Both the position numbers and the translations under genes were made by a program. Below are positions 2,197 to 53,652 of a DNA stretch of 64,000 nucleotides, piece by piece. Each line of letters opens with the position of its first letter. Position 1 is the stretch's first letter. Source of the DNA: Octopus sinensis (taxonomy: Eukaryota). The stretch spans positions 15,438,001-15,502,000 of the forward strand of contig NC_043023.1 in assembly GCF_006345805.1 (NCBI RefSeq). The letters are read 5' to 3'. The notes under the pieces are model-generated. The model was given only the letters and a program-made list of their open reading frames with translations. It was not told the DNA's origin and made no database searches.

Positions 2197-2360
2197 CCTG
2201 TTTTGATAAGTAGATCATATGTTACGATAATTAGATTAATGTGAATTAATGTTAATTACACGAAAGAGCAATTAACGGGAATATAGTTTAAAGACACTTT
2301 AAAAGTCGGCATGGAAAGTCAACGAAACGAACAAAAATATCCTGATGTTGTATACCTCGT
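2197..2360 (-). promoter_or_regulatory. Non-coding exon 1/core promoter of a ZNF gene; donor CAG|GTAAGA at 2197
   Basis: Homologous to 22829-22950, 26650-26777, 40802-40955 and 41278-41432. Each copy ends in a GT donor and lies upstream of a ZNF coding exon. Confidence 0.6.
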
Positions 2361-2800
2361 ATTACTACACATTTGTCGGATGATAAAACTGAGTTGGTAA
2401 ATTTTTTATGTTTTATTATTGCTATAATTACTATTTAAAATTTTGAATTGTAAGAAAAAAATCCAAATGATGGCAAAAGATACAAAACTAAAGCTTATTT
2501 TCCAGTCGATTGCTACTTTTACGCTGTTCTGTCGTCGAACCCGTAAGTTACAGGGACGGAAAGAAACGAATACAGCTTATCAGAGTGATGTTGGATGAGG
2601 ATAGGGGGAAAGATGCAGGCATCAGTGTTCGAAAACCATTTTTGGTTTGTTTATATTCCAGTAACTTAGTTGTGCAATGGAAGAGGGCGGGGGTAAAGAA
2701 TACGCACACCACCCGTTTACGGTGTAAGCCTAACCCATGGGTCGCAGGAGGCGGAAGAGGTCAAGCAGGACGCACGTGTGGTCATCGACGAAGGGACAGT

Positions 2801-4488: not shown

Positions 4489-4571
4489 TCGACTAAAGGC
4501 ACTGCTCCAGCATGGCCACTGTCAAATGCCTGAAACATGTAAAATAGATAGGTTTCCCTATTTTCTTCCAT

Positions 4572-5581
4572 GTATCCATATTTATTATTGAAATATCACT
4601 TCCAGTATCGAACTGAAGTTTAATATTTATTCCAATCATTTTTACGTGTACAAATTTTCTCATTTGGGAGTCGAATTTTGTTTCTGTTGAGAGCCCTCTA
4701 GGATCTTTAATGGTTGATCTTCAGAATTTAGTTCTGCAGTGTGAATTTCTGTATATTCAGTTGTTGTAAGGCCTTTTACCAAAAGAAGACACCTGAACAT
4801 CTCAGGTGTAATTCTTTGAGTTTAAAAATATTCACACATTCTGTTAATTGTTCCTGCGTATGTGATAAAATCACCATCCTCTTTTTTCATTCTATTCCAA
4901 AACACCATCCAAGTGTTAGACAAGTTTTATCACCGAATATGTTAGACAGTAATTCTATTGTTTCTTTAAAACAAATTTCATTGAGTTTTTTGGGGTAATA
5001 TGAAATTAAAGTAATGTTCATACTCAGATGGGGCTCATTTATGTCATAATAACCTTACTTTTTCTGTGTCTGACCATGTCTTACAATCTTCCTTAAAAAT
5101 TACCTGCTGTAGTACAATGCAACAGTTATACCGTCCTCTGGGTTATAACTGGATTCATCGAGTCCAAAACGGCGTCTGGCAAAAATGTACTTCCCTTATT
5201 TTTGGACTTCTTTGAATAAAGCTCCAATAATTGTTGTTGTTGCTGCCTTTGTCGTTGATTTTGCAACAGTTTTAAAGAAGCTAATTAGTCTTCCATGATT
5301 TAACAATTTTGTATCACAAAAATTTGTTAACTGACCTGCAAGAGCTTCGAAACCCTCATCGCCAGATGTTGTAACATAATTGTTCCGTACAATAAATAAG
5401 ATAACCAGAAAATTGTAACAACAATCTAATGAACTAACAAATCTTTTACGAACCAACATTCAATATTCCTTAGGAAGTAAACCAAGCGACACCTTCCAAC
5501 TTCAGTTGACTCTGAACCGCAAACTCACTCAGATCGTTACTATTTATACTTTACTCGAGCCAGTCTACTCTCATCACAACA
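4572..5581 (-). mobile_element. Ty3/Gypsy relic: 5' LTR (5367-5581), PBS, degenerate gag, protease
   Basis: Reverse-complement copy of 13547-14555. Protease reads KLQFDTGSDISII. Confidence 0.8.
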
Positions 5582-6531
5582 GGTGCCATTCTAACCAGAT
5601 GCCCATCATAAATCCCTGCTTGGTGTCTGGTAAGAACAAGACCATGAAAACCTGCTCTACAGAATGATTTATCAAAAAATAAGTATGATGATAATCACTT
5701 GCATGGGTTGAGCGGGGATGTGCTTGAACCATAGGTAAAGTGGGGCATTAGGCTCTTGAAAAATATTTCCCACTCTACACCCAAAACTGTGACAAACAGC
5801 AATAAGCCTCCAGCTAGTGCCAGAATATGTGGGCAGTAGCACAAAGGGTGCAGATCCTGGGATCCCTGAGTGTGTCCAGCAGAGGATAACTGATCACGGC
5901 TGGGAACTGGAGTGTAATACATTTGTGTCAAAATAATATATCCTCAAGGAAACAGAGCAAATTAATATAATCAATATTGTTTGAATAAAAAACACAAATC
6001 GTAATTAGTGAGTTGATGCAAATGAGGAAAATGTGAAAAATGAATTTATTTTGTAAAAAGTAATACATTTGCTGTATTTTATTCAGCAGGACATCTGTTT
6101 TATCATTAATATTGTTATTGATCAATATGAATAAGTATATGTTTAGTTAAGGTAGATTATTGAGAGAATGATTTAGCACAGATTACACAGTCATAAGAAT
6201 CTTCTCCTGTATGAATATGTTTGTGTTTAGTTTATTATTTCTCTCTATGAAAGAATGACTTGTCACAGATGTCACAGTGATATGATTTCTCTCCTGTATG
6301 AATGTATTTGTGATGAGTTCAATATTGTTCCACAGAGAATGATTTACCTCAGGTATCACAGCAATAGAGTTTCTCTCCTGTATGAATACGTTTATAAGTA
6401 TATACAGCATATTCACAATAGAATGATTTGCTGCAGACATCACAGTCACATAGTTTCTCTCCAGTATGAGCAGACTTGTAATTAATTAAATATTTTCTTA
6501 AACGGAATAATTTACTGCAGATACCACAGTG

Positions 6532-7740
<1,209 letters not shown>

Positions 7741-9270
7741 TATTGTTCTATAGTATACAAACACAAAATATAATTTTGCCTCCTTTTTTATATATTTCTA
7801 TTGCTTATATTTCCAGCAGTCCCGATCTTCATCAATATCTGAAGATGATACAAACACCTTTGCAGATATCTCCCGCTCCAAACAGAATGTGAAATACTTT
7901 AGCAAATATTCCAGGCAATGATGGAAACAAATGTTGCCATCAATTCAGAAGAAATATTTCACAGTTTTCCACCATAGACAAATCATATAAACAGAGTTAT
8001 GTCAAATATTTATAACTTCTTCCATTAGGTGATCAATATTCATGAAGTGTCACTAACATTTCACCTCCTGAAATGACACAGAAACAGAAGAAGATATAGG
8101 AAAAACTTAAAAAGCAGAGATTCAACTATTAAAAAAAATATAACTACATCTTCAAAATGATAAACTGTGGATAAAATCCTTCAATTTGTCTTTGTAATTT
8201 ATTTATGGTAATTTATAATATGGTAACCCTTTTGTTACCATATTTCTTTTGAGATTCAGTGTGTTTCTTTCAATTATTTTAAATATAATAAAGAATTTAG
8301 TAAACTTAGTTATCATTCAACTAGTGTTGGCAACATAAATTGTAACTAAGGTTTCGTGGAAGATTTTAATTCAAAACTTATGAAAACAAGACATTTTACC
8401 ACAGAGCCAGAGCCGGTTTGGGCCGGGTTAGTAACAAAAGGGTGTGGTCTTTGAAATTTATTTTATTAAAATTATATGATACAACCTTGTGTAATGTCTA
8501 CATATAGACGGACTTCAGTTCCTCTTCCTTCAGATATTATGTAAAACATTATCCCTTTAGTGTTCAGATTATTCTGTTAAATGTAATTCTTTTTCACTCA
8601 AATTGTTTTGAATTAATCATGCAATATCTTATAGCTTTTAGGTTTCAATGATGTGATTGTTTATTTCTAGAATGTCAATGTAGGTTAGTGTGAGGGGCCA
8701 GATACCGCCAGTTTGAATATAAAACATGCAGAATATCTGGGCCTGATATGGCCGGTTTTAAACAATAAAGGGTTCAACTATAGGATATTGGACAATAATA
8801 TGATAAGTGACTACTGTTTAACCCTAGGTATCCCTGACTGAGCAGATCTATTATTAATGAAATTAGGTAATGTTCATGATTGTTACAACTTCTGTAACAG
8901 ATCAAACATAAACATAAACTACAATTTAGTGAACCAACCCATCATGACTTTCCTCTGGTAACTTTATTAATAATAAAAACAAAACTGCACTCACATATGT
9001 TGAAGGTGTGGTCACTAATTTAGAGAAAGTGTTCTGTGAATTGACATATGAAGAGTAGAGCCAGGACAGAATGGCGATCCTTCGGTATAGGTACACACGT
9101 GACTTTGTTTACATTTCTGAAGATAACATAAACCCTTTTCTCCCACCCCCCACCCACATATAAAAAAACACCTTTTTGAAATGTATCCGGTACTTCCGGA
9201 TGTACACCGGTACTTATACCGTAAGATCGCCTTTCTTTTTAAAACAAAGTAAATAAAACACAAACGCATA

Positions 9271-9336
9271 GGTACTACTAGCGAAGACTGGACCCGGTAC
9301 GCGCTAGCTAGTCGTAAGTAGTCGATCCTACAACGA
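9271..9336 (+). mobile_element. Single terminus of a GGTACT-type (Merlin-like) MITE
   Basis: Near-identical to the left end of the two-ended copy at 21787-22401. Truncated at the palindrome junction. Confidence 0.6.
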
Positions 9337-9817
9337 AAATTTTAGGAAAAAAGTAAATAAGTAAGAAATAACTGCAAAATTTTACCGATGAATGTGTTAA
9401 ATTATAAGGCACAAAAAGAAAATGACTCTCCGCAGACACAACAGAATATGCTTCAATACACGAATTCATATAAAGAACCTTGCAAACCAAATCCAAAAAC
9501 GAAATAGAATTAATATCTGTTTCTTTATTACCCACAAGGGGCGAAACACGGACGGGACAAACAAGGACAGACAAACGGATTAAGTCGATTACATTGACCC
9601 AGTGCGTAACTGGTACTTAATTTATCGACCCCGAAATTCTATTTCGTTTTTGGATTTGGTTTGCAAGATTCTTTATATGTATTCGTGTATTGAAGCATAT
9701 TCTGTTGTGTCTGGGGAGAGTCATTTTCTTTTTGTGCCTTATAATTTAACACATTCATCGGTAAAATTTTGCAGTTATTTCTTATTTCTTACTTATTTCC
9801 TTTTTTCCTAAAATTTT
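9336..9817. repeat. Inverted repeat (arms 9336-9510 and 9636-9817) with a partial SINE as spacer
   Basis: aaaattttaggaaaaaag...gaaatagaat pairs with attctatttc...ctttttcctaaaatttt. Confidence 0.9.
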
Positions 9818-10451
9818 CTTTGCATCTTGCAACCTTTTCAATAGTTTTGACTCTGTCCGTTATTTACACTGCTTTTCCTTTTGTTTGTTTGGGTGCATTG
9901 AAACTAAACTAGAGAAAGTATTAGATTTATGACTCAGGTCATTATAGACGAAAGTAATGTCTTGTGTCATGAGTATCATTTTAAAGTGTAATTTATTCGG
10001 GCAACAGTTTATATCCACAGTTTATCATTATGAAAATGTAGTTATAATTTTTATTGTTAAACCTTTGTTTTTTAAAGTCTTTCCTATATCTTCTACTGTT
10101 TCTGTGTCATTTCAGATACTCGTATAAAGGAGTTTTACGTGAGATACATCATGAATATTGATCATCTTTTGAAAACGAATGTCAGCCGTTATAAATAATA
10201 GATAATAACTCTGTTTATATAATATATCTATGGTGAATAACGGTGAAATATTTCTTCTGAATTAATAGCAACATTTGTTTTCCTCATTGCCAGGAATATT
10301 TACAAAAGTATTGCATATTCAGTTTGAATGTGAGAAAATCTGGAAAGGTGTTTGTATCATTTTCAGATATTCAAGTTCAGATTTGCTGTAGAAGATATAT
10401 ATAAAGAAGAAGGGGGAAATATATTTTCTATCTGTATACTACAGAACAATA

Positions 10452-12596
10452 ATGAATAGTCTGGAAATGTTAAAAGAAAGAGAAAAGTTATCAAACCAAT
10501 CTGATATCTGTAAAAAGACTTATTCTAATAAGGGAAATCTCACTGTTCACAAATTCATTCATGCAGGGGGGAAACAATATCATTGTGATATCTGTGGTAA
10601 ATCATTCTCTCAAAAAAGTCACCTTACTCATCACAAATACACTCATACTGGAGAGAAACCATATCAGTGTGATATCTGTGGTAAATCATTCTCTCAAAGC
10701 ACTGTCCTTTCTTATCACAAATCTGTTCATACTGGAGAGAAACCATATCACTGTGATATCTGTGGTAAATCATTCTCTACAAAATATAACCTTACTAAAC
10801 ACAAATACATTCATACAAGAGAGAAACCAAATCAATGTCATATTTGCGGTAAATCATTCTCTCATAGAAGTTCCCTTGATTCTCACACACATATTCATAC
10901 AGGAGAAAAACCACATCAGTGTGATGTTTGTGGTAAATCATTCTCTCAAAAAAGTAGCCTTAATTCTCACAAATACATTCATACAGGTGAGAAACCATAT
11001 CAGTGTGATATCTGTGATAAATCCTTTTCATTAAAAAGTTATTTAACTACTCACAAATCCATTCATACAGGAGAGAAACCATATCGATGTGATATTTGTG
11101 GTAAATCATTCACTCAGAAATATAGCCTCACTCATCACAAATACACTCATACTGGAGAGAAACCATATCAATGTGATATTTGTGGTAAATCATTCTCTCA
11201 AAAGACTGCCCTTTCTTATCACAAAGTCGTTCATACTAGAGAGAAACCATATCACTGTGATATTTGTGGTAAATCATTCCCTAAAAAATATAACCTTACT
11301 AAACACAAATCCATACATACAGGAGAGAAACCATATCACTGTGATATTTGTGGTAAATCATTCCCTAAAAAATATAACCTTACTAAACACAAATCCATAC
11401 ATACAGGAGAGAAACCATATCACTGTGATATTTGTGGTAAATCATTCACTCAGAAATGTAACCTTAATTCTCACAAATATATTCACACAGGAGAGAAACC
11501 ATATCAGCGTGATATCTGTAATAAATCCTTTTCATTAAAAAGTTATTTAACCACTCACAAACTAACACATACAGGTGAGAAGCCATATCACTGCGATATT
11601 TGTGGTAAATCATTCTGTTATATGAGTAGCCTTGATTCTCACAAACACATACATACAGGAGAGAAACCATATCACTGTGATATTTGTGGTAAATCATTCT
11701 GTTATATGAGTAGCCTTGATTCTCACAAACACATACATACAGGAGAGAAACCATATCACTGTGATATTTGTGGTAAATCATTCTGTTATATGAGTAGCCT
11801 TGATTCTCACAAACACATTCATACAGGAGAGAAACCATATCACTGTGATATTTGTGGTAAATCATTCTGTTATATGAGTAGCCTTGATTCTCACAAACAC
11901 ATACATACAGGAGAGAAACCATATCACTGCGATATTTGTGGTAAATCATTCTGTTATATGAGTAGCCTTGATTCTCACAAACACATACATACAGGAGAGA
12001 AACCATATCACTGTGATATTTGTGGTAAATCATTCTGTTATATGAGTACCCTTGATTCTCACAAACACATTCACACAGGACAGAAACCACATCACTGCGA
12101 TATTTGTGGTAAATCATTCTGTTATACGAGTACCCTTGATTCTCACAAACACATTCACACAGGACAGAAACCACATCACTGCGATATTTGTGGTAAATCA
12201 TTCTGTTATACGAGTACCCTTGATTCTCACAAACACATTCACACAGGACAGAAACCACATCACTGCGATATTTGTGGTAAATCATTCTGTTATACGAGTA
12301 CCCTTGATTCTCACAAACACATTCACACAGGACAGAAACCACATCACTGCGATATTTGTGGTAAATCATTCTGTTATACGAGTACCCTTGATTCTCACAA
12401 ACACATTCATACAGGAGAGAAACCACATCACTGCGATATTTGTGGTAAATCATTCTCTCAAAAAAGTTACCTTGATTCTCACAAATCAGTTCATACAGGT
12501 GAGAAACCATATCGGTGCTATATCTGTGGTAAATCATTCTCTCAGAAGAGGTATTTAAATAGACACAAATGCATTAATACAGGGGACAAACCATAG
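10452..12596 (+). CDS. A-type C2H2 zinc-finger protein, 714 aa, 25 fingers (3 degenerate)
   Basis: Uninterrupted ORF of 28-aa CX2CX12HX3H units with TGEKP linkers. Acceptor ttcAG at 10115. Confidence 0.95.
11580..12420 (+). repeat. Ten near-identical 84-bp finger repeats
   Basis: 5x CYMSSLDSH, 1x CYMSTLDSH, 4x CYTSTLDSH. Confidence 0.95.
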
Positions 12597-13546
12597 CACT
12601 GTAGTATCTGCAGTAAATTATTCCGTTTAAGAAAATATTTAATTAATTACAAGTCTGCTCATACTGGAGAGAAACTATGTGACTGTGATGTCTGCAGCAA
12701 ATCATTCTCTCAGGAATATGCTGTATATACTTATAAACGTATTCATACAGGAGAGAAACTCTATTGGTGTGATATCTGCGGTAAATCATTCTCTGTGGAA
12801 CAATATTGAACTCATCACAAATACATTCATACAGGAGAGAAATCATATCACTGTGACATCTGGGACAAGTCATTCTTTCATAGAGAGAAATAATAAACTA
12901 AACACAAACATATTCATACAGGAGAAGATTCTTATGACTGTGTAATCTGTGCTAAATCATTCTCTCAATAATCTACCTTAACTAAATATATACTTATTCA
13001 TATTGATCAATAACAATATCAATGATAAAACAGATGTCCTGCTGAATAAAATACAGCAAATGTATTACTTTTTACAAAATAAATTTATTTTTCACATTTT
13101 CCTCATTTGCATCAACTCACTAATTACGATTTGTGTTTTTTATTCAAACAATATTGATTATATTAATTTGCTCTGTTTTCTTGAGGATATATTATTTTGA
13201 CACAAATGTATTACACTCCAGTTCCCAGCCATGATCAGTTATCCTCTGCTGGACACACTCAGGGATCCCAGGATCTGCACCCTTTGTGCTACTGCCCACA
13301 TATTCTGGCACTAGCTGGAGGCTTATTGCTGTTTGTTACAGTTTTGGGTGTAGAGAGGGAAATATTTTTCAAGAGCCTAATGCCCCACTCTACCTATGGT
13401 TCAAGCACATCCCCGCTCAACCCATGCAAGTGATTATCATCATACTTATTTTTTGCTAAATCCTTCTGTAGAACAGGTTTTCATGGTCTTGTTCTTACCA
13501 GACACCAAGCAGGGATTTATGATGGGCATCTGGTTAGAATGGCACC
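12597..13546 (+). other. A-type 3' UTR: decayed finger repeats followed by a conserved AT-rich segment with AATAAA (~13045)
   Basis: Repeated at 5582-6531, 37059-37990, 51798-52748 and 55536-56485; a diverged homologue lies at ~62100-62480. Confidence 0.7.
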
Positions 13547-14555
13547 TGTTGTGATGAGAGTAGACTGGTCCGAGTAAAGTATAAATAGTAACAATCTGAG
13601 TGGGTTTGCGGTTCAGAGTCAAGTGAAGTTGGAAGGTGTCGCTTGGTTTACTTCCTAAGGAATATTGAATGTTGGTTCGTAAAAGATTTGTTAGTTCATT
13701 AGATTGTTGTTACAATTTTCTGGTTATCTTATTTATTGTACGGAACAATTATGTTACAACATCTGGCGATGAGGGTTTCGAAGCTCTTGCAGGTCAGTTA
13801 ACAAATTTTTGTGATACAAAATTGTTAAATCATGGAAGACTAATTAGCTTCTTTAAAACTGTTGCAAAATCAACAACAAAGGCAGCAACAACAACAATTA
13901 TTGGGGCTTTATTCAAAGAAGTCCAAAAATGAGGGAAGTACATTTTTGCCAGACGCCGTTTTGGACTCGATGAATCCAGTTATAACCCAGAGGACGGTAT
14001 AACTGTTGCATTGTACTACAGCAGGTAATTTTTAAGGAAGATTGTAAGACATGGTCAGACACTGAAAAAGTAAGGTTATTATGACATAAATGAGCCCCAT
14101 CTGAGTATGAACATTATTTTAATTTCACATTACCCAAAAAAACTCAATGAAATTTGTTTTAAAGAAACAATAGAATTACTGTCTAACATATTCGGTGATA
14201 AAACTTCTCTAACACTTGGATGGTGTTTTGGAATATAATGAAAAAAGAGGATGGTGATTTTATCACATACGCAGGAACAATTAACAGAAAGTGTGAATAT
14301 TTTTAAACTCAAAGAATTTACACCTGAGATGTTCAGGTGTCTTCTTTTGGTAAAAGGCCTTACAACAACTGAATATACAGAAATTCACACTGCAGAACTA
14401 AATTCTGAAGATCAACCATTAAAGATCCTAGAGGGCTCTCAACAGAAACAAAATTCGACTCCCAAATGTGGAAATTTGTACACGTAAAAATGATTGGAAT
14501 ACATATTAAACTTCAGTTCGATACTGGATGTGATATTTCAATAATAAAAATGGAT
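13547..14555 (+). mobile_element. Ty3/Gypsy LTR retrotransposon relic: LTR 13547-13761, PBS, gag, aspartic protease
   Basis: LTR TGTTGTGA...TTACAACA with TATAAATA, followed by the PBS TGGCGATGAG. Broken frames read SSYNPEDGIT...IFKEDCKTWSDTEKVRLL...ICFKETIELLSNIFGDKTSL...DFITYAGTIN...FKLKEFTPEMFRCLLLVKGL (K02A2.6-like gag), then KLQFDTGCDISII (protease DTG). Confidence 0.85.
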
Positions 14556-14556
14556 A

Positions 14557-14921
14557 CATGTTTCAGGCATTTGACAATGGCCATGCTGGAGCAGTGCCTT
14601 TAGTCGAGCAAATAAACCCAGGACTTGTTCTTTGTAAGCCTAGTACTTATTCTATTTTTCTCTTTTGCCAAACTGCTATGTGACGGGGGTGTAAACACAC
14701 CAGCATCGGTTGTCAAGCAATGTTTGGGGGATAAACATATACACACACACACATTATACGATGGGCTTCTTTCAGTTTCCGTCTACCAAATCCACTTACA
14801 AGGCTTTGGTCGGCCCGAGGCTATAGTAGAAGACACTTGTCCAAAGTGCTACACAGCGAGACTGAACCTGGGACCATGTGGTTGGTAAGCAAGCTACTTA
14901 CCACACAGCCACTCCTACGCC
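14557..14921 (-). mobile_element. tRNA-head SINE, family S2
   Basis: Minus strand starts ggcgtaggagTGGCTGTGTGGtaag...GGTTCAGTC (A/B boxes) and contains an (AC/AT)n tract. Copies at 27343, 35403, 50762, 57925 and 58320. Confidence 0.8.
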
Positions 14922-16990: not shown

Positions 16991-17313
16991 CAGCGCAAAC
17001 TTGTACGAAGTACAGACATCTGCGTGTTAATATACATCTCAGGAAAAACAGGCTTCTCATATTCAATAAGATTGGTGGCACCCTGGTAGTACATATCATT
17101 GTGGAAAACGTAAAACCACCTATAATTGTTATATATATATTAATTACCAGAGTGACCCACGACTTGACTGGTTACAGGCGCTGAGTACTATTTACGAAAA
17201 GTGGTCCCGCTGCACACCATCGCGCTAGCTAGTTGTGACTAGTCAATCCTACAACTACCTGGCGCGAGTGCACGTATGCAAATTAATAGATGCACGCATG
17301 TGCAAAGCACGTA

Positions 17314-19918: not shown

Positions 19919-21357
19919 CTCGTGAGGATTCAATATTGTTCTATAGTATACAAGCACAACATATAATTTTGCTTCCTTTTTTATATATTTCTATTGCTTA
20001 TATTTCCAGCAGTTCCGATCTTCATCAATATCTGAAGATGATACAAACACCTTTGCAGCAGATATCTCCCGCTCCAAACAGAATGTGAAAGACATTAGCA
20101 AATATTCCAGGCAATGATGGAAACAAATGTTGCCATTAATTCAGAAGAAATATCTCACAGTTTTCCACCATAGACAAATCGTATAAACAGAGTTATGTCA
20201 AATATTTATAACATCTTCCATTAGATGATCAATATTCATGAAGTATCACTAACATTTCACCTCCTGAAATGACACAGAAACAGAAGAAGATATAGGAAAG
20301 ACTTAAAAAGCAGAGATTCAACTATTAAAAAGAATATAACTACATCTTCATAATGTTAAACTGTGGATATTATCCTTTAATTTGTCTTTGAAATTTATTT
20401 ATGGTAATTTATAATATGGTAACCCTTTTGTTACCATATTTCTTTTGAGATTCAGTGTGTTTCTTTCAATTATTTTAAATATAATAAAGAACTTAGTAAA
20501 CTAACTTAGTTATCATTCAACTAGTGTTAGGAACATAAATTGTAACTAAGGTTCGGTGGAAGATTTTAATTCAAAACTTATGAAAACAAGACATTTTACC
20601 ACAGAGCCAGAGCCAGTTTTGGCCGGGTTAGTAACAAAAGGGTGTGGTCTTTGAAATTTATTTTGTTATTAAAATTATATGATACAAACTTGTATAATGT
20701 CTACATATACACAGACTTCAGTTCCTCTTCCTTCAGATATTATGTAAAACATTATCCCTTTAGTGTTCAGATTATTCTGTTAAATGTAATTCTTTTTCAC
20801 TCAAATTGTTTTGAATTAATCATGCATTATCTTATGGCTTTGAGGTTTCAATGATGTGATTGTTTATTTCTAGAATGTCAATGTAGGTTAGGTGTGAGAG
20901 GCCAGTTTGAATATAAAACATGTAGAATATCTGGGCCTGATATGGCTGGTTTAAACAATAAAGGGTTCAACTCTAGGATATTGGACAATAATATGATAAG
21001 TGACTACTGTTTAACCCTAGGTTATCCCTGACTGAGCACATCTATTATTAATGAAATTAGGTAATATTCATGATTGTAACAACTTCTGTAACAGATCAAA
21101 CATAAACTAGAATTTAGTGAACCAACCCATCATGACTTTTCCTCTTGTAACTTTATTAATAATAAAAACAAACTGCACTCACATATGTTGAAGGTGTGGT
21201 CACTAATTTCGAGAAAGTGTTCTGTGAATTGACGTATGAAGAGTAGAGCCAGGACAGAATGGCGATCCTTCGGTATAGGTACACACGTGACTTTGTTTAC
21301 ATTTCTGAACCCTAACAGAAACCCTTTTCTCCCACCCCTAACCCTAACAGAAACACT

Positions 21358-22401: not shown

Positions 22402-22828
22402 CATCGCCAGTATATGACATTTGCCGATTCTGTCTACAAAAGGCTGTATCTGCTTTTTATCATAGTGCTATCACTGGCCACATGTTTCAGTTAGCTATTG
22501 ATGTTTTATGATGTTGCAGATTATTTATTCTGAGAAGCTGAAATGGACAGAATTATTAACGTGTATCATTTTGACAGAATAAACAGCAAATACAGATGTT
22601 TAGCAAATGATACATCTGTGATAAAACAACAAACAGCTTTGAATGGACACAACCAGCAAATGGATTATCTACCAAAATAATTGAAATTAAAAACCAGGTG
22701 CTTCACTGGACAATAGAATTAATATCGATTTCAGACTACTATTATTTAAAACTATCGATACTGTCTGGATTTTCCAATTAGCCAGATACATAGGCTTTTA
22801 CTAAAAAGAAAATATGTATTACAACCTA

Positions 22829-22950
22829 CCTCTGATGATAATTTAGTCGCTGTTTTATAAGAAATATTTTTAATTACACGCTCGGACGAGAGGGAAGTAT
22901 TACTGGAAGACACATAGAAAAGCTGACACGGTATGTCAACGAAACGAAAA
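22829..22950 (-). promoter_or_regulatory. Exon 1/promoter of the 18461 gene; donor GAG|GTAGGT
   Basis: Homologue of the other exon-1 copies; carries the CGTTTCGTTGAC motif. Confidence 0.55.
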
Positions 22951-23700
22951 ACCCTAAATGTCTATTGTTAAAATGGATCGGCTTGATTATCTGTGTAATT
23001 TCTTTATCATATAAAATAATATAAGATTAAATTTTTCTTATTTGTGTAATTCCTTGCAAACATAAGGACACAGGAAATCTTCCACCAAACCTTAGTTACA
23101 ATTTATGTTCCTAACACTAGGTGAATGATAATTAAGTTAGTTTACTAAATTGTTTATTATATTTAAAATAATTGAAAGAAACACACTGAATCTCAAAAGA
23201 AATATGGTAACAAAAGGGTTACCATATTATAAATTACCATAAATAAATTTCAAAGACAAATTAAAGGATTATATCCACAGTTTATCATTATGAAGATGTA
23301 ATTATATTTTTTTTATATTTGAATTTCTGCTTTTTGAGACTTTCCTATATCTTCTGTTTCTGTGTCATTTCAGGAGGTGAAATGTTAGTGATACTTCATG
23401 AATATTGATCATCTAATGGAAGATGTTATAAATATTTGACATAACTCTGTTTATACGATTTGTCTATGGTGGAAAACTGTGAAATATTTCTTCTGAATTA
23501 ATGGCAACATTTGTTTCCATCATTGCCTGGAATATTTGCTAAAGTATTTCACATTCTGTTTGGAGCGGGAGATATCTGCAAAGGTGTTTGTATCATCTTC
23601 AGATATTGATGAAGATCAGAACTGCTGGAAATATAAGCAATAGAAATATATAAAAAAGGAAGCAAAATTATATTTTGTGCTTGTATACTATAGAACAATA

Positions 23701-26416: not shown

Positions 26417-26649
26417 GATGGGAGTAAGACACGTGCCTGTTCCCCACACCCACCACTATCTGACAAGTCGTGTTGCTTTCTTTGACATTGTGGTTCGGTA
26501 CACGGAGGATGTAAAAGTAGCAATAAAAATGTCAGCTTCTAGCTTTGTATCATTTGTTATTATTTGCATTTTTTCTTACAATTCACATTTTCAAAAATTT
26601 ACCACTTTACTTTTAGCATCAGACAAAAGTGTTATTAATACGGGAAGCA

Positions 26650-26777
26650 CAACAACCGGATTCCTGATTCGTTTATTTGACGTTCCGTGTAGGCTTTTCG
26701 ATGTGTCTTTTTCGCTAGATCGCTTATTTGTGTTATTAAAAATATTATAAAACACCGACTAATATATTATAAGAGGT
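26650..26777 (+). promoter_or_regulatory. Exon 1/promoter of the 29599 gene; donor GAG|GTAAGA at 26776
   Basis: Diverged homologue of the other exon-1 copies, followed by homologous intron-1 sequence. Confidence 0.55.
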
Positions 26778-27342
26778 AAGATGTAACACATATTTTCTTT
26801 TTAGTAAAAGCCTATGTATCTGGCTAATTGGAAACACCAGGCAGTTTTGAAAGTTTTAAATACTGCTTGTCTGAAATCGATATTAATTCTATTGTCCAGT
26901 AAACTTCGTAAATTATGCCTAGAAAATCTGGATTTTACTTGTGGCCATGAAAAAGCACCAGATTTTTAATTACAATTATTTTAATAAATACTTCATTATT
27001 TTAGTAGATATTTCAGTGTTTTCATTTCAAGTTTTAATTTGGAAAACTGACAGTTCATTCTATTAATAAACTGGTATAATTTTTGTAAAAAATAAAATTA
27101 AGAAGTGATTTTGTTATGGTTATCTGGATTGCTATAACCTTTAGAATAATACCTATCCAAACCGATTTTGGCCGTTTTCTTTTAACTTAAAAACCACGGG
27201 AGGGGCCTTTTCGGTTAAAATAAAACAAGTAAATATTTTCAGAGGAAAAGGTGAACAATTCAAGGGATGTTTTGCTGGTGTTTCTAGCACAACCGAAACC
27301 ACCCTCCCTTTTCACTCTCACGTATCTCTCTCTTTTACTCTT

Positions 27343-28997: not shown

Positions 28998-29598
28998 ATG
29001 TTTTACATAATATCCGATGGTAGAGGAGCTGAAGTCTGTGTATATGTAGACATTACACAAGGTTGTATCATATGATTTTAATAACAGAATATATTTCAAA
29101 GACAACTTAAAGGATTATATCCACAGTTTATGATTATGAAAATGTAATTATATTTTCTATTGTTGAATCTCTGCTTTTTAAGTCTTTCCTATATCTTCTA
29201 CTGTTTCTGTGTCATTTCAGAATATGAGATGTTAGTGGTATAAAGGAGTTTTTACATCAGATACATCATGAATATTGATCATCACCTGAAGACTAATGGA
29301 AGATGTTATAAATAATATATAGAACCACGTTTATATAATTTATCTATGGTGAAGAACTGTGAAAAATTCCATCTGAATTAATAGCAACATTTGTTTCCAT
29401 CATTGCCTGGAATATTTGCTGAAGTATTTCCCATTCAGTCTGAACTTGGGAAAATCTGCAAAGGTGTTTCTATTACCTTTAGATATTGACAAAGACCAGA
29501 CTTGTGGAAAATATAACTAGAGAAGTATTTGAATCGACAAAGGAATATATAAGAAGAACAGGAAAATATATTTTGTGTTTGTATACTATAGAACAATA

Positions 29599-37990: not shown

Positions 37991-39703
<1,713 letters not shown>

Positions 39704-40322
39704 TATTGTTCTGTAGTATACAGACAGAAAATATATTTCTCCCTTCTTCTTTATATATATCTTCTACAGCAAATCTGATCTTAAATATCTGAAAATGATA
39801 CAAACACCTTTCCAGATTTTCTCACATTCAAACACAATGCAAAATACTTTTGTAAATATTCCTGGCAATGAGGAAACAAATGTTGCTATTAATTCAGAAG
39901 AAATATTTCACCGTTATTCACCATAGATATATTATACAAACAGAATTATTATCTATTATTTATAACGGCTGACATTCGTTTTCAAAACATGATCAATATT
40001 CATGATGTATCTCACGTAAAACTCCTTTATACGAGTATCTGAAATGACACAGAAACAGTAGAAGATATAGGAAAGACTTAAAAAGCAAAGGTTTAACAAT
40101 AAAAATTATAACTACATTTTCATAATGATAAACTGTTGCCCGAATAAATTACACTTTAAAATGATACTCATGACACAAGACATTACTTTCGTCTATTATG
40201 ACCTGAGTCATAAATCTAATACTTTCTCTAGTTTAGTTTCAATGCACCCAAACAAACAAAAGGAAAAGCAGTGTAAATAACGGACAGAGTCAAAACTATT
40301 GAAAAGGTTGCAAGACGCAAAG

Positions 40323-41896
40323 AAAATTTTAGGAAAAAAGGAAATAAGTAAGAAATAAGAAATAACTGCAAAATTTTACCGATGAGTGTGTTAAATTATA
40401 AGGCACAAAAAGAAAATGACTCTCCCCAGACGCAACAGAATATGCTTCAATACACGAATTCATATAAAGAACCTTGCAAACCAAATCAAAAAACGAAATA
40501 GAATTAATATCTGTTTCTTTATTACCCACAAGGGGCGAAACACGGACGGGACAAACAAGGACAGACAAACGGATTAAGTCGATCACATTGACCCCAGTGC
40601 GTAACTGGTACTTAATTTATCGACCCCGAAAGGATGAAAGGCAAAGTCGACCTTGGCGGAATTTGAACTCAGAACGTAACGGCGGACGAAATTAATATCG
40701 ATGTCAGACTAGCAACATTGAATACTTTCATTATTGTCTGGAGTTTCGAATTTTCCAGGTTCTTCTGCTTTCACTAAAAATAAAATATGTACGATATCTT
40801 ACCTGTTATGATAAATAAATCAGTGCTAAAAGTCAATTAACGCAAACCACACCAAAAAAGCCATTCAGCGGGAAACGTAATTTAAAGAAAGCTCAAAAAA
40901 TAGACATGGAATGTAGACGAAACGAACTGATATCCGGATGTTGTATATATCGTAATACTATAAATTTATCGGATGCTAAAACTAAGTTGGTAAATTCTCA
41001 ATGTTTTTTATTGGTATAATTACTTTTCAAAAATGTGAGTTATGAGGAAAAATCCAAATGATGACAAAACATACAAAACTGACTGCTTATTTTCATATCT
41101 ATTGGTACTTTTCCACTATCCTGTTACCGAACCCTTAAATTACAGGGACGGAAAGAAACCAACAGGACTTATCAAAGAGGGACGGAGGGAAAACTGGAAG
41201 ACTCGTGTGTGTTATTTCTACCTGTATTCGAGAACCATTGTTACTTTGTTTACATTCCTGTAACTTCGTTGTATATGTTACGATATATACAACATCCGGA
41301 TGTTCAGTTGTTTCGTCGACATTCCATGTCTATTTTTTGAGCTTTCTTTAAATTACGTTTCCCGCTGAATGGCTTTTTTGGTGTGGTTTGCGTTAATTGA
41401 CTTTTAGCACTGATTTATTTATCATAACAGGTAAGATATCGTACATATTTTATTTTTATTGAAAGCAGAAGAACCTGGAAAATTCGAAACTCCAGACAAT
41501 AATGAAAGTATTCAATGTTGCTAGTCTGACATCGATATTAATTTCGTCCGCCGTTACGTTCTGGGTTCAAATTCCGCCGAGGTCGACTTTGCCTTTCATC
41601 CTTTCGGGGTCGATAAATTAAGTACCAGTTACGCACTGGGTCAATGTGATCGACTTAATCCGTTTGTCTGTTCTTGTTTGTTTCGTCCGTGTTTCGCCCC
41701 TTGTGGGTAATAAAGAAACAGGTATTAATTCTATTTGGTTTGCAAGGTTCTTTATATGAATTCGTGTATTGAAGCATATTCTGTTGTGTCTGGGGAGAGT
41801 CATTTTCTTTTTGTGCCTTATAATTTAACACACTCATCGGTAAAATTTTGCAGTTATTTCTTATTTCTTACTTATTTACTTTTTTCCTAAAATTTT
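40323..41896. repeat. 1.57-kb palindrome: arms 40323-40955 and 41278-41896, ~320-bp spacer
   Basis: Each arm contains exon 1, the donor, intron start and an S1 SINE with TSD aattaatatc. Confidence 0.95.
40802..41432. promoter_or_regulatory. Bidirectional promoter with two outward-facing exon-1 copies (donors at 40802 minus, 41431 plus)
   Basis: CAG|GTAAGA on both strands, an ETS-like CCGGATGT and the conserved exon-1 motif in both arms. Confidence 0.6.
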
Positions 41897-42670
41897 CGTT
41901 GTAGGATCGACTACTTACGACTAGCTAGCGCGTACCGGGTCCAGTCTTCGCTAGTAGTACCTATGCTTTTGTGTTTTATTTACTTTGTTTTAAAAAGAAA
42001 GGCGATCTTACGGTATAAGTACCGGTGTACTTCCGGAAGTACTGGATACATTTCAAAAAGGTGTTTTTTTTATATGGGGGGGGGGTTCTGTTATCTTTAG
42101 AAATGTAAACAAAGACACGTGTGTACCTATACCGAAGGATCGCCATTCTGTCCTGTCTCTACTCTTCATACGTCAATTCACAGAACACTTTCTCTAAATT
42201 AGTGACCACACCTTCAACATATGTGAGTGCAGTTTGTTTTTATTATTAATAAAGTTACGAGAGGAAAAGTCATGATGGGTTGGTTCACTAAATTGTAGTT
42301 TATGTTTATGTTTGATCTGTTACAGAAGTTGTAACAATCATGAACATTACCTAATTTCATTAATAATAGATCTGCTCAGTCAGGGATAACCTAGGGTTAA
42401 ACATTAGTCACTCATCATATTATTGTCCAATATCCTATAGTTGAACCCTTTATTGTTTAAACTGGCCATATCAGGCCCAGATATTCTGCATGTTTTATAT
42501 TCAAACTGGCGGTATCTGGGCCCTCACACCTAACCTACATTGACATTCTAGAAATAAACAATCACATCATTGAAACCTCAAAGCCATAAGATATTGCATG
42601 ATTAATTCAAAACAATTTGAGTGAAAAAGAATTACATTTAACAGAATAATCTGAACACTAAAGGGATAAT

Positions 42671-43164
42671 AAGAAATATTGAATTTCTAAATCTCTCATA
42701 GAGAGATGTACAGTGGTGGGGCGATAGAATGGTTGTATACTGTCAATCTAACAAGAACGTGACAGTAGGGGGTAAACCACCGTTGTATAGCCCTAGGAGG
42801 CATCGAACGCCTCCTGACAGCTTCGACACATTTTTTCCGTTTCCTTATATACATATACGAAGTCCAGACAAACACCCCCAACCGCCGGAACTGCATCTGA
42901 GTTTATATATATACAGATACGAAGTCCAGACAAATATCACCAGCCAACCGGTGTCTGCTACTCTAGGCAATGATCTTGAAACACGGTGTCCCTAGATGCA
43001 GTTCCGGCGGTTGGGGGTGTTTGTCTGGACTTCGTATATGTATATAAGGACACGGAAAAAATGTGTCGAAGCTGTCAGGAGGCGTTCGATGCCTCCTAGG
43101 GCTATACAACGGTGGTGTACCCCCTACTGTCACGTTCTTGTTAGATTGACAGTATACAACCATT
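42671..43164. mobile_element. ~495-bp fold-back insertion with 13-bp TSD; family unknown
   Basis: Flanked by ctaaagggataat (42658-42670, 43165-43177). 174-bp inverted arms. Empty sites at ~8550 and ~20755. Confidence 0.8.
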
Positions 43165-43990
43165 CTAAAGGGATAATGTTTTACATAATATCTGAAGGAA
43201 GATGAACTGAAGTCCGTGTATATGTAGTCATTACACAAGGTTGTATCATATAATTTTAATAACAAAATAAATTTCAAAGACCACACCCTCTTGTTACTAA
43301 CCCGGCCAAAACGGGCTCTGGCTCTGTGGTAAAATGTCTTGTTTTCATAAGTTTTGAATTAAAATCTTCCACCAAACCTTAGTTACAATTTATGTTCCCA
43401 ACACTAGTTGAATGATAACTAAGTTAGTTTACTAAATTCTTTATTATATTTAAAATAATTGAAAGAAACACACTGAATCTCAGCAGAAATATGGTAACAA
43501 AAGGGTTACCATATTATAAATTACCATAAATAAATTTCAAAGACAAATTAAAGGATTTTATCCACAGTTTATCATTATGAAGATGTAGTTATATTTTTTT
43601 TTATAGTTGAATCTCTGCTTTTTAAGTTTTTCCTATATCTTCTTCTGTTTCTGTGTCATTTCAGGAGGTGAAATGTTAGTGATACTTCATGAATATTGAT
43701 CATCTAATGGAAGATGTTATAAATATTTGACATAACTCTGTTTATATGATTTGTCTATGGTGGAAAACTGTGAAATATTTCTTCTGAATTAATGGCAACA
43801 TTTGTTTCCATCATTGCCTGGAATATTTGCTAAAGTATTTCACATTATGTTTGGAGTGGAGATATCTGCAAAGGTGTTTGTATCATCTTCAGGTATTGAT
43901 GAAGATCGGAACTGCTGGAAATAACAGCAATAGAAACATATAAAAAAGGAAGCAAAATTATATTTTGTGTGTGTATACTATAGAACAATA

Positions 43991-45547
43991 ATGAATCCTC
44001 AAGAGATGACAAAAGAAAGAGAAAAATTATCACACCAATGTGATATCTGTAAAATGACTTTTTCTAATCAGGGAAATCTCACTGTTCACAAATTCATTCA
44101 TGCAGGTAGGAAGCCATATGACTGTGATGTCTGTGGTAAATCATTCTCTCAGAAAAGTAACCTTACCTCTCACAAATCCATTCATACAGGAGAGAAACCA
44201 TATGAATGTGATATTTGTTGTAAATCATTCTCTCAGAAAATTCACCTTACTAGACACAAATCCATTCACACAGGTGAGAAACCATATCAATGTGATATCT
44301 GTGGAAATTCATTCTCTGATAAATGTCACCTTTCTTCTCACAAATACATTCATACAGGTGAGAAACCATATCAATGTGATATTTGTGGTAAATCATTCTC
44401 CCATAAGCACATCCTTACTTCTCACATATCCATTCATACCGGAGTGAAACCTTATCACTGTGATATTTGTGGTAAATCATTCTCTCAAAGGACTGGCCTT
44501 TCTTATCACAAATCTGTTCATACTGGAGAGAAACCAAATCAGTGTGATATTTGTGGTAAATCATTCTCTCAGAAAAGTAGCCTTACCACTCACAAATACA
44601 TTCATACAGGAGAGAAACCTCATCAATGTGATGTCTGTGGAATGTCATTCTCTCAAAAAAGTAGCCTTGATTCTCATAAATACATTCATACAGGTGAGAA
44701 ACCATATCAGTGTGATATTTGTGGAAAATCATTCTCTCAAAAAAGTAACCTTGATTCTCATAAATATATTCATACAGGAGAGAAACCTCATCAATGTGAT
44801 GTCTGTGGAATGTCATTCTCTCAAAGACGTTACCTTGATTCTCACAAACATATTCATACAGGAGAGAAACCATATCAATGTGATATCTGTGGAAATTCAT
44901 TCTCTGATAAATGTCACCTTTCTTCTCACAAATACATTCACAGAGGTGAGAAACAATATCACTGTGATATTTGTGGTAAATCATTCTCCCATAAGCACAT
45001 CCTTACTTCTCACATATCCATTCATACAGGAGTGAAACCTTATAACTGTGATATTTGTGGTAAATCATTCTCTCAAAGGACTGGCCTTTCTTATCACAAA
45101 TCTGTTCATACTGGAGAGAAACCAAATCAGTGTGATATCTGTGGTAAATCATTCTCTCAGAAAAGTAGCCTTACCACTCACAAATACATTCATACAGGAG
45201 AGAAACCTCATCAATGTGATGTCTGTGGAATGTCATTCTCTCAAAAAAGTAGCCTTGATTCTCATAAATACATTCATACAGGTGAGAAACCATATCAGTG
45301 TGATATTTGTGGAAAATCATTCTCTCAAAAAGGTAACCTTGATTCTCATAAATATATTCATACAGGAGAGAAACCTCATCAATGTGATGTCTGTGGAATG
45401 TCATTCTCTCAAAGACGTTACCTTCATTCTCACAAACCCATTCATACAGGAGAGAAACCATATCAATGTGATATTTGTGGTAAATCGTTCTTCCATAAGC
45501 GTAGCCTTACTCATCACAAATCCATTCATACTGGAGAGAAACTATGA
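43991..45547 (+). CDS. B-type C2H2 ZNF, 518 aa, 18 fingers; last ancestral finger lost by a 2-nt deletion
   Basis: Intact ORF; acceptor at 43664. aaactatgag here versus aaactgtatgag in paralogues. Confidence 0.93.
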   Translation: MNPQEMTKEREKLSHQCDICKMTFSNQGNLTVHKFIHAGRKPYDCDVCGKSFSQKSNLTSHKSIHTGEKPYECDICCKSFSQKIHLTRHKSIHTGEKPYQCDICGNSFSDKCHLSSHKYIHTGEKPYQCDICGKSFSHKHILTSHISIHTGVKPYHCDICGKSFSQRTGLSYHKSVHTGEKPNQCDICGKSFSQKSSLTTHKYIHTGEKPHQCDVCGMSFSQKSSLDSHKYIHTGEKPYQCDICGKSFSQKSNLDSHKYIHTGEKPHQCDVCGMSFSQRRYLDSHKHIHTGEKPYQCDICGNSFSDKCHLSSHKYIHRGEKQYHCDICGKSFSHKHILTSHISIHTGVKPYNCDICGKSFSQRTGLSYHKSVHTGEKPNQCDICGKSFSQKSSLTTHKYIHTGEKPHQCDVCGMSFSQKSSLDSHKYIHTGEKPYQCDICGKSFSQKGNLDSHKYIHTGEKPHQCDVCGMSFSQRRYLHSHKPIHTGEKPYQCDICGKSFFHKRSLTHHKSIHTGEKL

Positions 45548-51110: not shown

Positions 51111-51797
51111 ATGGATACAGGTGAGAAACCATATCAGTGTGATGTTTGTGGTAAATCATTCTCTCACAGAAGTCACCTTACTTCTTACAATTCCGTTCAT
51201 ACTGGAGAGAAACCATATCAGTGTGATATCTGTGGTAAATCATTTTCTGAAAAAAGTCACCTTAGTAGACACAAATACATTCATACAGGAGAGAAACGAT
51301 ATCACTGTGATATCTGTGATAAATCATTCTCTTACTTGAGCACTTTAAATTCTCATAAACCCATTCATACAGGAGAGAAATCATATCACTGTGATGAATC
51401 CTTTTCATCAAAAAGTCATTTAACTACTCACGAACTCACTCATGCTCATAAGAGGCCATATCCCTGTGATATTTGTGGTAAATCATTCTCTCAAAGGGGA
51501 GGCCTTACTTATCACAAATACACTCGTACAGGAGAGAAACCATATAAATGTGATATTTGTGGTAAATCATTCTCTCAAAAAGGTCACCTTACATATCACA
51601 ATTCCGTTCATACAGGTGAGAAACCATATCAGTGTGATATCTGTGATAAATCCTTTTCATTAAAAAGTTATTTAACTACTCACAAACTCACTCATGCTCA
51701 CGAGAGACCATATCAGTGCGATATCTGTGGTAAATCATTCTCTCAAAAAAGGTACTTAAATGGACACAAATGCATTAATACAGGGGACAAACCATAG
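51093..51797 (+). pseudogene. 5'-truncated A-type ZNF fragment (8 fingers, 4 intact) with in-frame ATGs supplied by the SINE flank
   Basis: MPETCKMD|TGEKPY junction near 51115. No ZNF head, intron or acceptor. Confidence 0.75.
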
Positions 51798-52748
51798 CAC
51801 TGTAGTATCTGCAGGTAAATCATTCCGTTTAAGAAAATATTTAATTAATTACAAGTCTGCTCATACTGGAGAGAAACTATGTGACTGTGATGTCTGCAGC
51901 AAATCATTCTCTCAGGAATATGCTGTATATACTTATAAACGTATTCATACAGGAGAGAAACTCTATTGCTGTGATACCTGAGGTAAATCATTCTCTGTGG
52001 AACGATATTGAACTCATCACAAATACATTCATACAGGAGAGAAATCATATCACTGTGACATCTGGGACAAGTCATTCTTTCATAGAGAGAAATAATAAAC
52101 TAAACACAAACATATTCATACAGGGTAAGATTCTGATGACTGTGTAATCTGTGCTAAATCATTCTCTCAATAATCTACCTTAACTAAACATATACTTATT
52201 CATATTGATCAATAAAAATATCAATGATAAAACAGATGTCCTGCTGAATAAAATACAGCAAATGTATTACTTTTTACAAAATAAATTCATTTTTCACATT
52301 TTCCTCATTTGCATCAACTCACTAATTACGATTTGTGTTTTTTATTCAAACAATATTGATTATATTAATTTGCTCTGTTTTCTTGAGGATATATTATTTT
52401 GACACAAATGTATTACACTCCAGTTCCAAGCCATGATCAGTTATCCTCTGCTGGACACACTCAGGGATCCCAGGATCTGCACCCTTTGTGCTACTGCCTA
52501 CATATTCTGGCACTAGCTGGAGGCTTATTGCTGTTTGTCACAGTTTTGGGTGTCGAGTGGGAAATATTTTTCAAAAGCCTAATGCCCCACTCTACCTATG
52601 GTTCAAGCACATCCCCGCTCAACCCATGCAAGGGATTATCATCATACTTATTTTTTGCTAAATCATTCTGTAGAGCAGGTTTTTATGGTCTTGTTCTTAC
52701 CAGACACCAAGCAGGGATTTATGATGGGCATCTGGTTAGAATGGCACC

Positions 52749-52890
52749 TGTTGTGATGAGAGTTACCATGTCCCCTTGTGAGAGATAGACTGGTTCGAGT
52801 AAAGTATAAATAGTAACGATCTGAGTGGGTTTGCGGTTCAGAGTCAAGTGAAGTCGGAAGGTGTCGCTTGGTTTACTTCCTAAGGAATAT
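52749..52890 (+). mobile_element. Truncated Gypsy LTR (U3 with TATAAATA at 52805) fused to intron 1 of the next gene
   Basis: LTR sequence stops at cttcctaaggaatat and continues as ttttatttttagtgaaagc (intron 1, compare 41445). Confidence 0.8.
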
Positions 52891-52984
52891 TTTATTTTTA
52901 GTGAAAGCAGAAGAACCTGGAAAATTCGAAACTCCAGACAATAATGAAAGTATTCAATGTTGCTAGTCTGACATCGATATTAAT

Positions 52985-53152
52985 TTCGTCCGCCGTTACG
53001 TTCTGGGTTCAAATTCCGCCGAGGTCGACTTTGCCTTTCACCCTTCGGAGTCGATAAATTAAGTACCAGTTACGCACTGGGGTCAATGTAATCAACTTAA
53101 TCCGTTTGTTTGTCTCGTCCGTGTTTCGCCCCTTGTGGGTAATAAAGAAACA
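52985..53152 (+). mobile_element. SINE S1 in intron 1
   Basis: Same insertion as 41540-41720. Confidence 0.8.
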
Positions 53153-53652
53153 GATATTAATTCTATTTCGTTTTTGGATTTGGTTAGCAAGATTCGTGTA
53201 TTGAAGCATATTCTGTTGTTTCTGGGGAGAGTCGAAAATGTAGTTATAATTTTTATTGTTAAACCTTTGCTTTTTAAGTCTTTCCTATATCTTCTACTGT
53301 TTCTGTGTCATTTCAGATACTCGTATAAAGGAGTTTTACGTGAGATACATCATGAATATTGATCATGTTTTGAAAACGAATGTCAGCCGTTATAAATAAT
53401 AGATAATAACTCTGTTTATATAATATATCTATGGTGAATAATGGTGAAATATTTCTTCTGAATTAATAGCAACATTTGTTTTCCTCATTGCCAGGAATAT
53501 TTACAAAAGTATTTCACACTCAGTTTGAATGTGAGAAAATCTGGAAAGGTGTTTGTATCATTTTCAGATATTCAAGATCAGATTTGTTGTAGAAGATATA
53601 TATAAAGAAGAAGGGGAAAATATATTTTCTGTCTGTATACTATAGAACAATA

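Follow-up and report, generated by a model that had tools for sequence, protein, structure and literature searches.

An inverted partial duplication joins a copied 5' unit of one zinc-finger gene to its divergently oriented neighbour in Octopus sinensis

Within a 64,000-nucleotide stretch of the Octopus sinensis genome (hereafter the window), a local inverted partial duplication in a fast-rearranging C2H2 zinc-finger gene cluster has placed a copy of the 5' unit of one gene (A-type, hereafter A) upstream of the coding exon of its neighbour (B-type, hereafter B), and this copied unit now probably gives B its first exon and core promoter. The structure and the timing of the rearrangement are established by sequence comparison among the paralogues, and the rearrangement is of an ordinary kind within a gene cluster that is highly dynamic. 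Coordinates of the features discussed are collected in Table 1.

Results

Zinc-finger genes of the window and their common 5' unit

The window has a G+C content of 35.7% and holds a cluster of poly-C2H2 zinc-finger genes. Both A and B encode C2H2 fingers in tandem, joined by H/C links, and contain no further domain, as expected of the C2H2 zinc-finger family, and match Pfam zf-H2C2_2 and zf-C2H2 with E values from 1e-76 to 1e-147. Searches with the full-length proteins returned only generic zinc-finger proteins, the top identity among the matches listed being 65% to an Octopus sinensis protein. Exact look-up in public assemblies gave no record of the A and B proteins, and the family-specific N-terminus used alone as query gave no candidate and no close relatives in the protein collection. 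The O. sinensis locus of the 65% relative contained no exon-1 homologue, and its stored gene range begins at the coding start. The open reading frames of A (minus strand, 39703 down to 38477) and B (plus strand, 43991-45547) are arranged 5' to 5', and the two gene bodies form an inverted pair at 77-80% identity.

Nine gene bodies that are otherwise 77-97% alike are preceded by an identical acceptor 17-mer, TTTCTGTGTCATTTCAG, which ends at 40039 (minus) for A and at 43664 (plus) for B, so that exon 2 would start at 40038 and 43665, respectively. The sequence TATCATAACAG/GTAAGAT occurs at 40796-40813 (minus) and 41420-41437 (plus) and gives putative exon ends at 40803 and 41430. An earlier note on this DNA had predicted splice junctions at these four coordinates (41430, 43665, 40803 and 40038), and donor and acceptor motifs are indeed found at each of them.

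A search of the 64 kb with a profile built from five copies located exactly five full exon-1 units, with matches only beside zinc-finger genes and with every full unit facing a zinc-finger gene body 0.8-2.5 kb off. The donor AGGTA is invariant across the five units, which are otherwise ~76% identical, and the best-conserved non-coding stretch among them is the 110 bp directly after the donor. Additionally, the upstream region can be aligned over 300-470 bp among three old paralogues. The putative exon-1 unit holds no long open reading frame and so would be a 5' UTR leader. Given the invariant donor, the perfect acceptors in nine gene bodies and the alignable upstream region, this unit looks functional. 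The conserved 110-bp intronic block is best read as regulatory or as involved in splicing. A tRNA or small-RNA origin of the block was considered and rejected after ARAGORN, Rfam and RNAalifold gave nothing in its favour: there was no Rfam match, and the consensus fold (-6.3 kcal/mol) had no meaningful covariation, with 1/24 pairs changed on both sides.

Genes of this family are built from three conserved parts, namely a short 5' unit without coding sequence (it comprises the upstream region, the putative exon 1 with its donor, and the conserved 110-bp intron stretch), an intron 1 of 0.8-2.5 kb and the conserved acceptor into a single coding exon. With the coding sequence in one exon behind a long intron 1, intron breakpoints spare the protein, and 5' units and coding exons recombine freely.

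Table 1. Features of the rearranged A-B locus and related sequences (positions are those of the window)
Feature	Position	Strand	Remarks
Left arm, original 5' unit of A	40318..40955	-	Colinear with copy 3 (53233-52887), locus 2 and older unit 2083-2404; holds 153 bp upstream of donor (putative core promoter and non-coding exon 1), donor 40803/40802 and 485 bp of intron 1
A exon 1 with proximal promoter (putative)	40803..40955	-	Donor AGGTA invariant in 5 paralogous units
Spacer, native upstream region of A exon 1	40956..41277	-	Aligned with 2310-2673 and 26690-26456
Inner junction	41266..41278	+	Compared with 2634-2690 and left arm
Right arm, derived inverted copy of 40318-40955	41278..41901	+	13-bp deletion; both ends are breakpoints relative to every paralogue
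Copy of putative exon 1 and core promoter, facing B	41278..41430	+	Donor 41430/41431
Outer junction, right arm to B intron 1 inside MITE-like element	41896..41901	+	Three-way comparison of left arm, B' and locus 2
SINE-like repeat, 179 bp	40511..40689	-	9-bp target-site duplication AATTAATAT at 40502-40510 and 40690-40698
SINE-like repeat copy	41544..41721	+	Duplicated target site at 41535-41543 and 41722-41730, one duplication copy with one substitution
494-bp insertion in B intron 1	42671..43164		12-13-bp flanking duplication CTAAAGGGATAAT; 174-nt inverted arms, 99% complementary
Remnant of palindrome in locus 2	9331..9822		188-bp outer arms around 125 bp of SINE
A gene body	38477..40055	-	Conserved acceptor, exon 2 from 40038; ATG 39703; 408-aa poly-C2H2 ORF
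B gene body	43648..45547	+	Conserved acceptor, exon 2 from 43665; ATG 43991; 518-aa poly-C2H2 ORF
Full exon-1 unit	2043-2404	-	Profile search
Exon-1 unit of B'	22683-23000	-	Profile search; donor GAG/GTAGGT at ~22829; kind of unit lost by B
Full exon-1 unit	26595-26936	+	Profile search
Full exon-1 unit	40641-40997	-	Profile search
Full exon-1 unit	41234-41592	+	Profile search
Partial intronic piece of exon-1 unit	52887-53034		Profile search
Acceptor 17-mers	173-189, 8068-8084, 10099-10115, 20264-20280, 23357-23373		
Acceptor 17-mers	29204-29220, 40039-40055, 43648-43664, 53300-53316		

Two inverted arms around an unrepeated spacer

The earlier note had also described exon 1, its donor and ~480 bp of intron as present twice, facing outward around a ~320-bp spacer and each time with a SINE and its target-site duplication. 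A repeat finder, BLAST and a global alignment recover this arrangement nearly exactly where it had been placed, with the SINE body and a 9-bp duplication located in each arm. Within the 64-kb window the repeat finder and BLAST both detect the two mutually inverted arms. The former reports three segments, separated by gaps and 95-98% complementary, and the latter joins 40318-40955 and 41901-41278 into one match of 639 columns at 95.6% identity with gaps counted. When the arms are aligned globally, 17 of the 624 aligned positions are substituted (2.72%) and there are two indel events, one of them the 13-bp deletion in the right arm. The left arm is 638 bp long (~0.64 kb), and the 322-bp spacer is neither itself palindromic nor itself repeated. 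In each arm a CAG/GTAAGA donor is preceded by 153 bp of sequence and followed by ~470-485 bp of intron that contains the SINE-like repeat, and the two arms are identical over 140 bp across exon and donor (40775-40914 on the left, ~41319-41458 on the right). An inverted repeat of this kind cannot have arisen by chance.

The SINE-like repeat has a target-site duplication together with an empty site in paralogues, and has many dispersed copies, as a SINE should. The empty site, ATCGATATTAATTCTATT, is uninterrupted in the older paralogues; several copies of the repeat occur in the window, and one 42-kb Octopus sinensis locus gives 13 matches at 77-93%. The family is confirmed, on sequence evidence, as octopod, and the repeat travelled with the arm when the arm was copied. 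In a search for a tRNA, small-RNA or other pol III origin of this repeat, ARAGORN and Rfam returned no match; a B-box-like GAGTTCAAATTCCGCC is visible by eye only.

The left arm is original and the right arm derived

Colinearity marks the left arm as original and the right arm as its copy. The former has A-type sequence on either side and, together with the entire spacer, keeps the order found in other paralogues, and the latter lies between two breakpoints. For example, copy 3 (53233-52887) covers 40418-40788, the second A-B locus of the window (locus 2, 7632-10455) matches 39700-40505, and an older paralogous unit (2083-2673) covers 40690-41272 at 75%, which takes in the inner arm and the whole spacer. 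On the spacer side, 40905-41272 matches 2310-2673 at 75%, and 40904-41179 matches 26690-26456, in the unit upstream of gene 29575, at 63%. Thus the spacer is the usual upstream region of the family, in the orientation of A.

The proposal that the right copy is fused near 41896, within a MITE-like element, to the intron of B is borne out by an outer breakpoint at 41897/41898, beyond which the sequence is that of intron 1 of the paralogue B' (at 18461; from 21851 downwards) and of locus 2. The microhomology at this junction amounts to TC, or to as many as 6 nt if one mismatch is allowed. At the inner junction, homology to the A-type upstream region stops at ~41272 and is followed by a few filler bases and then by the right arm. 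Inverted arms of which one is ancestrally colinear, with junctions that carry microhomology or short insertions, identify the structure as an inverted segmental duplication.

What B has lost can be read from B', which keeps ~980 bp more of intron 1, up to its own donor, and the right arm stands in place of this ~980 bp of intron and of the exon-1 unit that B' still holds. The earlier description of B' as retaining its own, different exon 1 at 22829 is right as to retention and wrong as to difference, since the B' unit is homologous, at ~77% identity, with this exon-1 unit and has diverged from it. B' had also been credited with a two-ended MITE, and the far end of the MITE-like element does survive only there, as a weak terminal inverted repeat (21816-21833/22347-22364); related ends are also present at 17173-17272. 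With the left arm original, the right arm lying between breakpoints and the lost part kept by B', replacement of the 5' region of B by a copy of its A-type neighbour's unit stands as a structure. As a separate observation, B' reads ...TILNPHEM at 19921-19957 versus ...TIMNPQEM in the others, so that the usual start codon of the family is altered and the first ATG lies 4 codons downstream.

Locus 2 and the timing of the duplication

Locus 2 repeats the entire A-B pair in inverted orientation at 2.3-3.3% divergence, and its outer junction (9331-9336) is identical to that of the pair described above (locus 1). The right arm and the B side of locus 2 also have derived states in common, namely 40341 G>T and a 1-nt deletion at 40592. 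The shared junction and derived states indicate that the inverted duplication predates the split of the two loci, and by the same junction the palindromic A-B arrangement is not unique to locus 1. Missing from locus 2 is the equivalent of 40506-41601 (1.1 kb), a stretch that takes in the spacer, both copies of exon 1, the whole of one SINE and a portion of the second. At 9636 the sequence across the deletion is CGACCCCGA/AATTC. The deletion is asymmetric, with ~2 nt of microhomology, and the loss of the centre may be a genuine microhomology deletion or else a collapse in the assembly. The 494-bp insertion in intron 1 of B has an empty site in both locus 2 (8548-8560) and B' (20751-20763), and by this comparison it is a gain of locus 1 after the two loci split.

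Two further ideas about the arms were abandoned. Arm-to-arm gene conversion is unsupported, as the derived states follow descent, and the right arm at first seemed to have changed in excess (6.4% against copy 3), an effect that vanished after site-by-site polarisation.

The two gene bodies of locus 2, at 4489-7557 and 11568-14607, form 3-kb inverted arms that are 91% identical, which sets the B-type 5' end (7632-8560) on an A-like finger array and indicates a chimera or a converted gene. The A gene of locus 2 (10452-12596, 714 aa) contains two runs of near-identical tandem fingers, with ~6 copies of one 28-residue unit and ~4 of another, and this internal expansion of the array is very recent.

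Discussion

Course of the rearrangement and proposed role of the copy

By sequence comparison, a rearrangement with two junctions, through replicative template switching or through end joining, made a reversed copy of a 638-bp piece of the A 5' unit. This piece takes in 153 bp on the upstream side of the donor and 485 bp of intron 1, the resident SINE-like repeat included. The copy landed 322 bp upstream of the original with its far end joined to intron 1 of B, and B lost its own exon-1 unit and ~1 kb of its intron. This event preceded the duplication that gave rise to locus 2, which later lost the centre of the palindrome. At locus 1 the copied unit may supply B with a first exon and a core promoter. 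Transcription of the two genes would in that case diverge from starts separated by under 630 bp, with an identical 5' leader, and the spacer would be shared as upstream DNA in native orientation for A and reversed for B.

Is the copied unit used?

The same structure may instead be an inert scar of error-prone segmental duplication, in which the right exon-1 copy is unused and B is either a silent, young, 5'-truncated pseudogene or is started elsewhere. This is possible, but we doubt it. Copies with a truncated 5' end are common in the window, where four of the nine gene bodies have no exon-1 unit (acceptors 8068-, 10099+, 23357+ and 53300+), and locus 2 has lost both of its exon-1 copies. In addition, the right copy holds just 153 bp of sequence upstream of the donor. 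The spacer is where the upstream motifs shared by A, copy 4 and gene 29575 are found, and hence for B they are reversed and at different distances. The mirror-image regulatory DNA that had been attributed to the pair extends to the 153 bp upstream of each donor and not to the 322-bp spacer, which is native upstream DNA for A and reversed for B. Against an inert scar, the right arm has an intact donor and shows no change in the conserved block of the intron or over the 140 bp that span the exon, native upstream DNA lies directly beside the copy, and B retains its 518-aa open reading frame and a perfect acceptor. The open reading frame is weak evidence because all copies are young (2-4% divergence). 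Furthermore, long intact frames persist where no exon-1 unit remains, in the A gene of locus 2 (714 aa) and in copy 3 (553 aa), so an intact frame does not show the presence of a promoter, and an argument for selection from frame intactness was dropped on this ground. The low divergence of a 232-bp conserved block between the arms is likewise not significant (2/14 independent events, binomial P ~0.07), and the CpG-rich SINE inflates arm divergence outside the block.

If the copied unit does serve B, as we prefer to think, the further question is whether the two units fire side by side. The putative donors face outward 627 bp apart, and if both exon-1 units are used the starts must fall within this interval. 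That both copies are active, with two genes of different finger arrays (~80% identical) running divergently from one 322-bp region behind an identical 5' leader, is a tentative reading of the sequence. In that event the two mRNAs would carry the same leader sequence and not complementary ones; a hairpin RNA or endo-siRNA precursor from the palindrome would need one transcript across both arms, by read-through from outside. The centre-deleted locus 2 would then be a natural knockout of a shared promoter, and intron-1 breakpoints would represent routine reshuffling of promoters and coding exons in this family.

Under a different history, A and B would be an old head-to-head pair in which both genes had an exon 1 of their own, with A sequence overwriting the exon-1 region of B by gene conversion; this is very improbable and is contradicted by the junction anatomy. 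The A and B gene bodies do form an old inverted pair (77-80%) and all exon-1 units of the cluster are homologous, but no B-type upstream region is present to the left of 41278, where the spacer is A-type and in A orientation up to 41272. Moreover, the right arm includes the intron of A with the SINE and its target duplication, and ends in the MITE-like element ~980 bp from the position of the B' donor, so that the flanks lack the colinearity that conversion of an existing B exon 1 would need. Short-spacer inverted repeats are both a recognised class of assembly artefact and a transposon architecture, and the centre-deleted locus 2 could itself be an assembly collapse, but a chimeric or fold-back read or a foldback/MITE-type transposon is scarcely credible here, since the arms differ by 2.7% and two indels, the spacer is unrepeated, the arm content is gene-specific and colinear with paralogues rather than a dispersed repeat, and the outer junction recurs with shared derived substitutions independently at locus 2.

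Comparison with known systems

Bidirectional promoter pairs are commonly defined by transcription starts less than 1 kb apart, and the classic bidirectional promoter is a single, usually CpG-rich region that fires both ways. Like such pairs (see also PMC2688522 and PMC3815023), A and B lie on opposite strands with their putative donors 627 bp apart and with shared DNA between them. The difference, as far as sequence alone can tell, is that each side would have its own duplicated core unit with just the spacer shared. Among animals, inverted duplicates make up 20-40% of linked duplicates and head-to-head pairs ~10-21% (PMC3194840). The present case resembles inverted local gene duplications in being a young inverted duplicate near its source within a family cluster, but here the 5' unit alone was duplicated and was grafted onto another paralogue.

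Replicative template switching (FoSTeS/MMBIR) and fold-back inversion are known routes to complex rearrangements. Microhomology of 0-6 nt or a short filler of a few bases at both junctions, the nearby inverted copy and the loss of sequence are all in keeping with them. However, the mechanism proposed here is drawn from junction anatomy, and end joining of a fragment into a break leaves the same product. Sex-chromosome palindromes are inverted repeats of tens to hundreds of kilobases with genes in their arms, and deletion of palindrome centres is also known. The A-B structure is similar in having an inverted repeat with a spacer, and locus 2 appears to have lost its centre through an asymmetric microhomology deletion, but the scale here is hundreds of bp and there is no sign of arm-to-arm gene conversion.

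Partial and chimeric gene duplicates can recruit a new 5' exon or promoter, and B similarly has a coding exon joined to a foreign 5' unit, a process also visible in copy 4 of the same window. In contrast, the unit recruited by B is a homologue from a neighbouring paralogue, and the novelty gained is therefore small. The principle is already familiar, and the value of the locus is that of a worked example and not of a new mechanism. If the copied unit is active, it would offer a clean and datable case of a duplicated gene that regained a promoter by borrowing that of its neighbour, and would illustrate the origin of a bidirectional arrangement in one step. Comparisons are built in, as B' retains the original 5' unit and locus 2 lacks both exon-1 copies.

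Other rearrangements in the cluster

The window contains nine acceptors and only five exon-1 units, which indicates that intron-1 breakpoints are common in it. Such breakpoints lie at 545 (copy 4), 52887-52891 (copy 3), 23075 (B''), 41898/9336 (B) and 9636 (locus 2). Copy 4 (1-2673) is a mosaic in which 1-545 is only 1.7% diverged from the proximal intron of A, 1440-1884 consists of B-type intron-1 pieces in opposite orientation and without the MITE-like element, and 2083-2673 is an exon-1 unit just 75% identical to that of A. The disparity between the 1.7% divergence of the proximal intron and the 75% identity of the exon-1 unit indicates that reassortment of 5' units with coding exons is recurrent here. 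At 23075 the upstream region of B' meets the proximal intron of B'', ~245 bp from the B' donor, which makes another head-to-head junction, this one without a duplicated exon 1; the gene body of B'' at 23677 (plus) has an open reading frame cut to 198 aa. A 5'-truncated A-type fragment at 51115-52891 is joined to intron 1 (52887-53034) of the A-type gene 53653 (copy 3), with the joint ~15 bp short of the expected donor, so that exon 1 is lost and the 553-aa frame remains intact. Finally, a 371-aa open reading frame at 3197-4312 (minus) contains a CCHC knuckle (CYKCGLRGHIRAFC) and a tail rich in lysine and glutamate and resembles a retroelement gag; Pfam gives it no match at E<=0.001.
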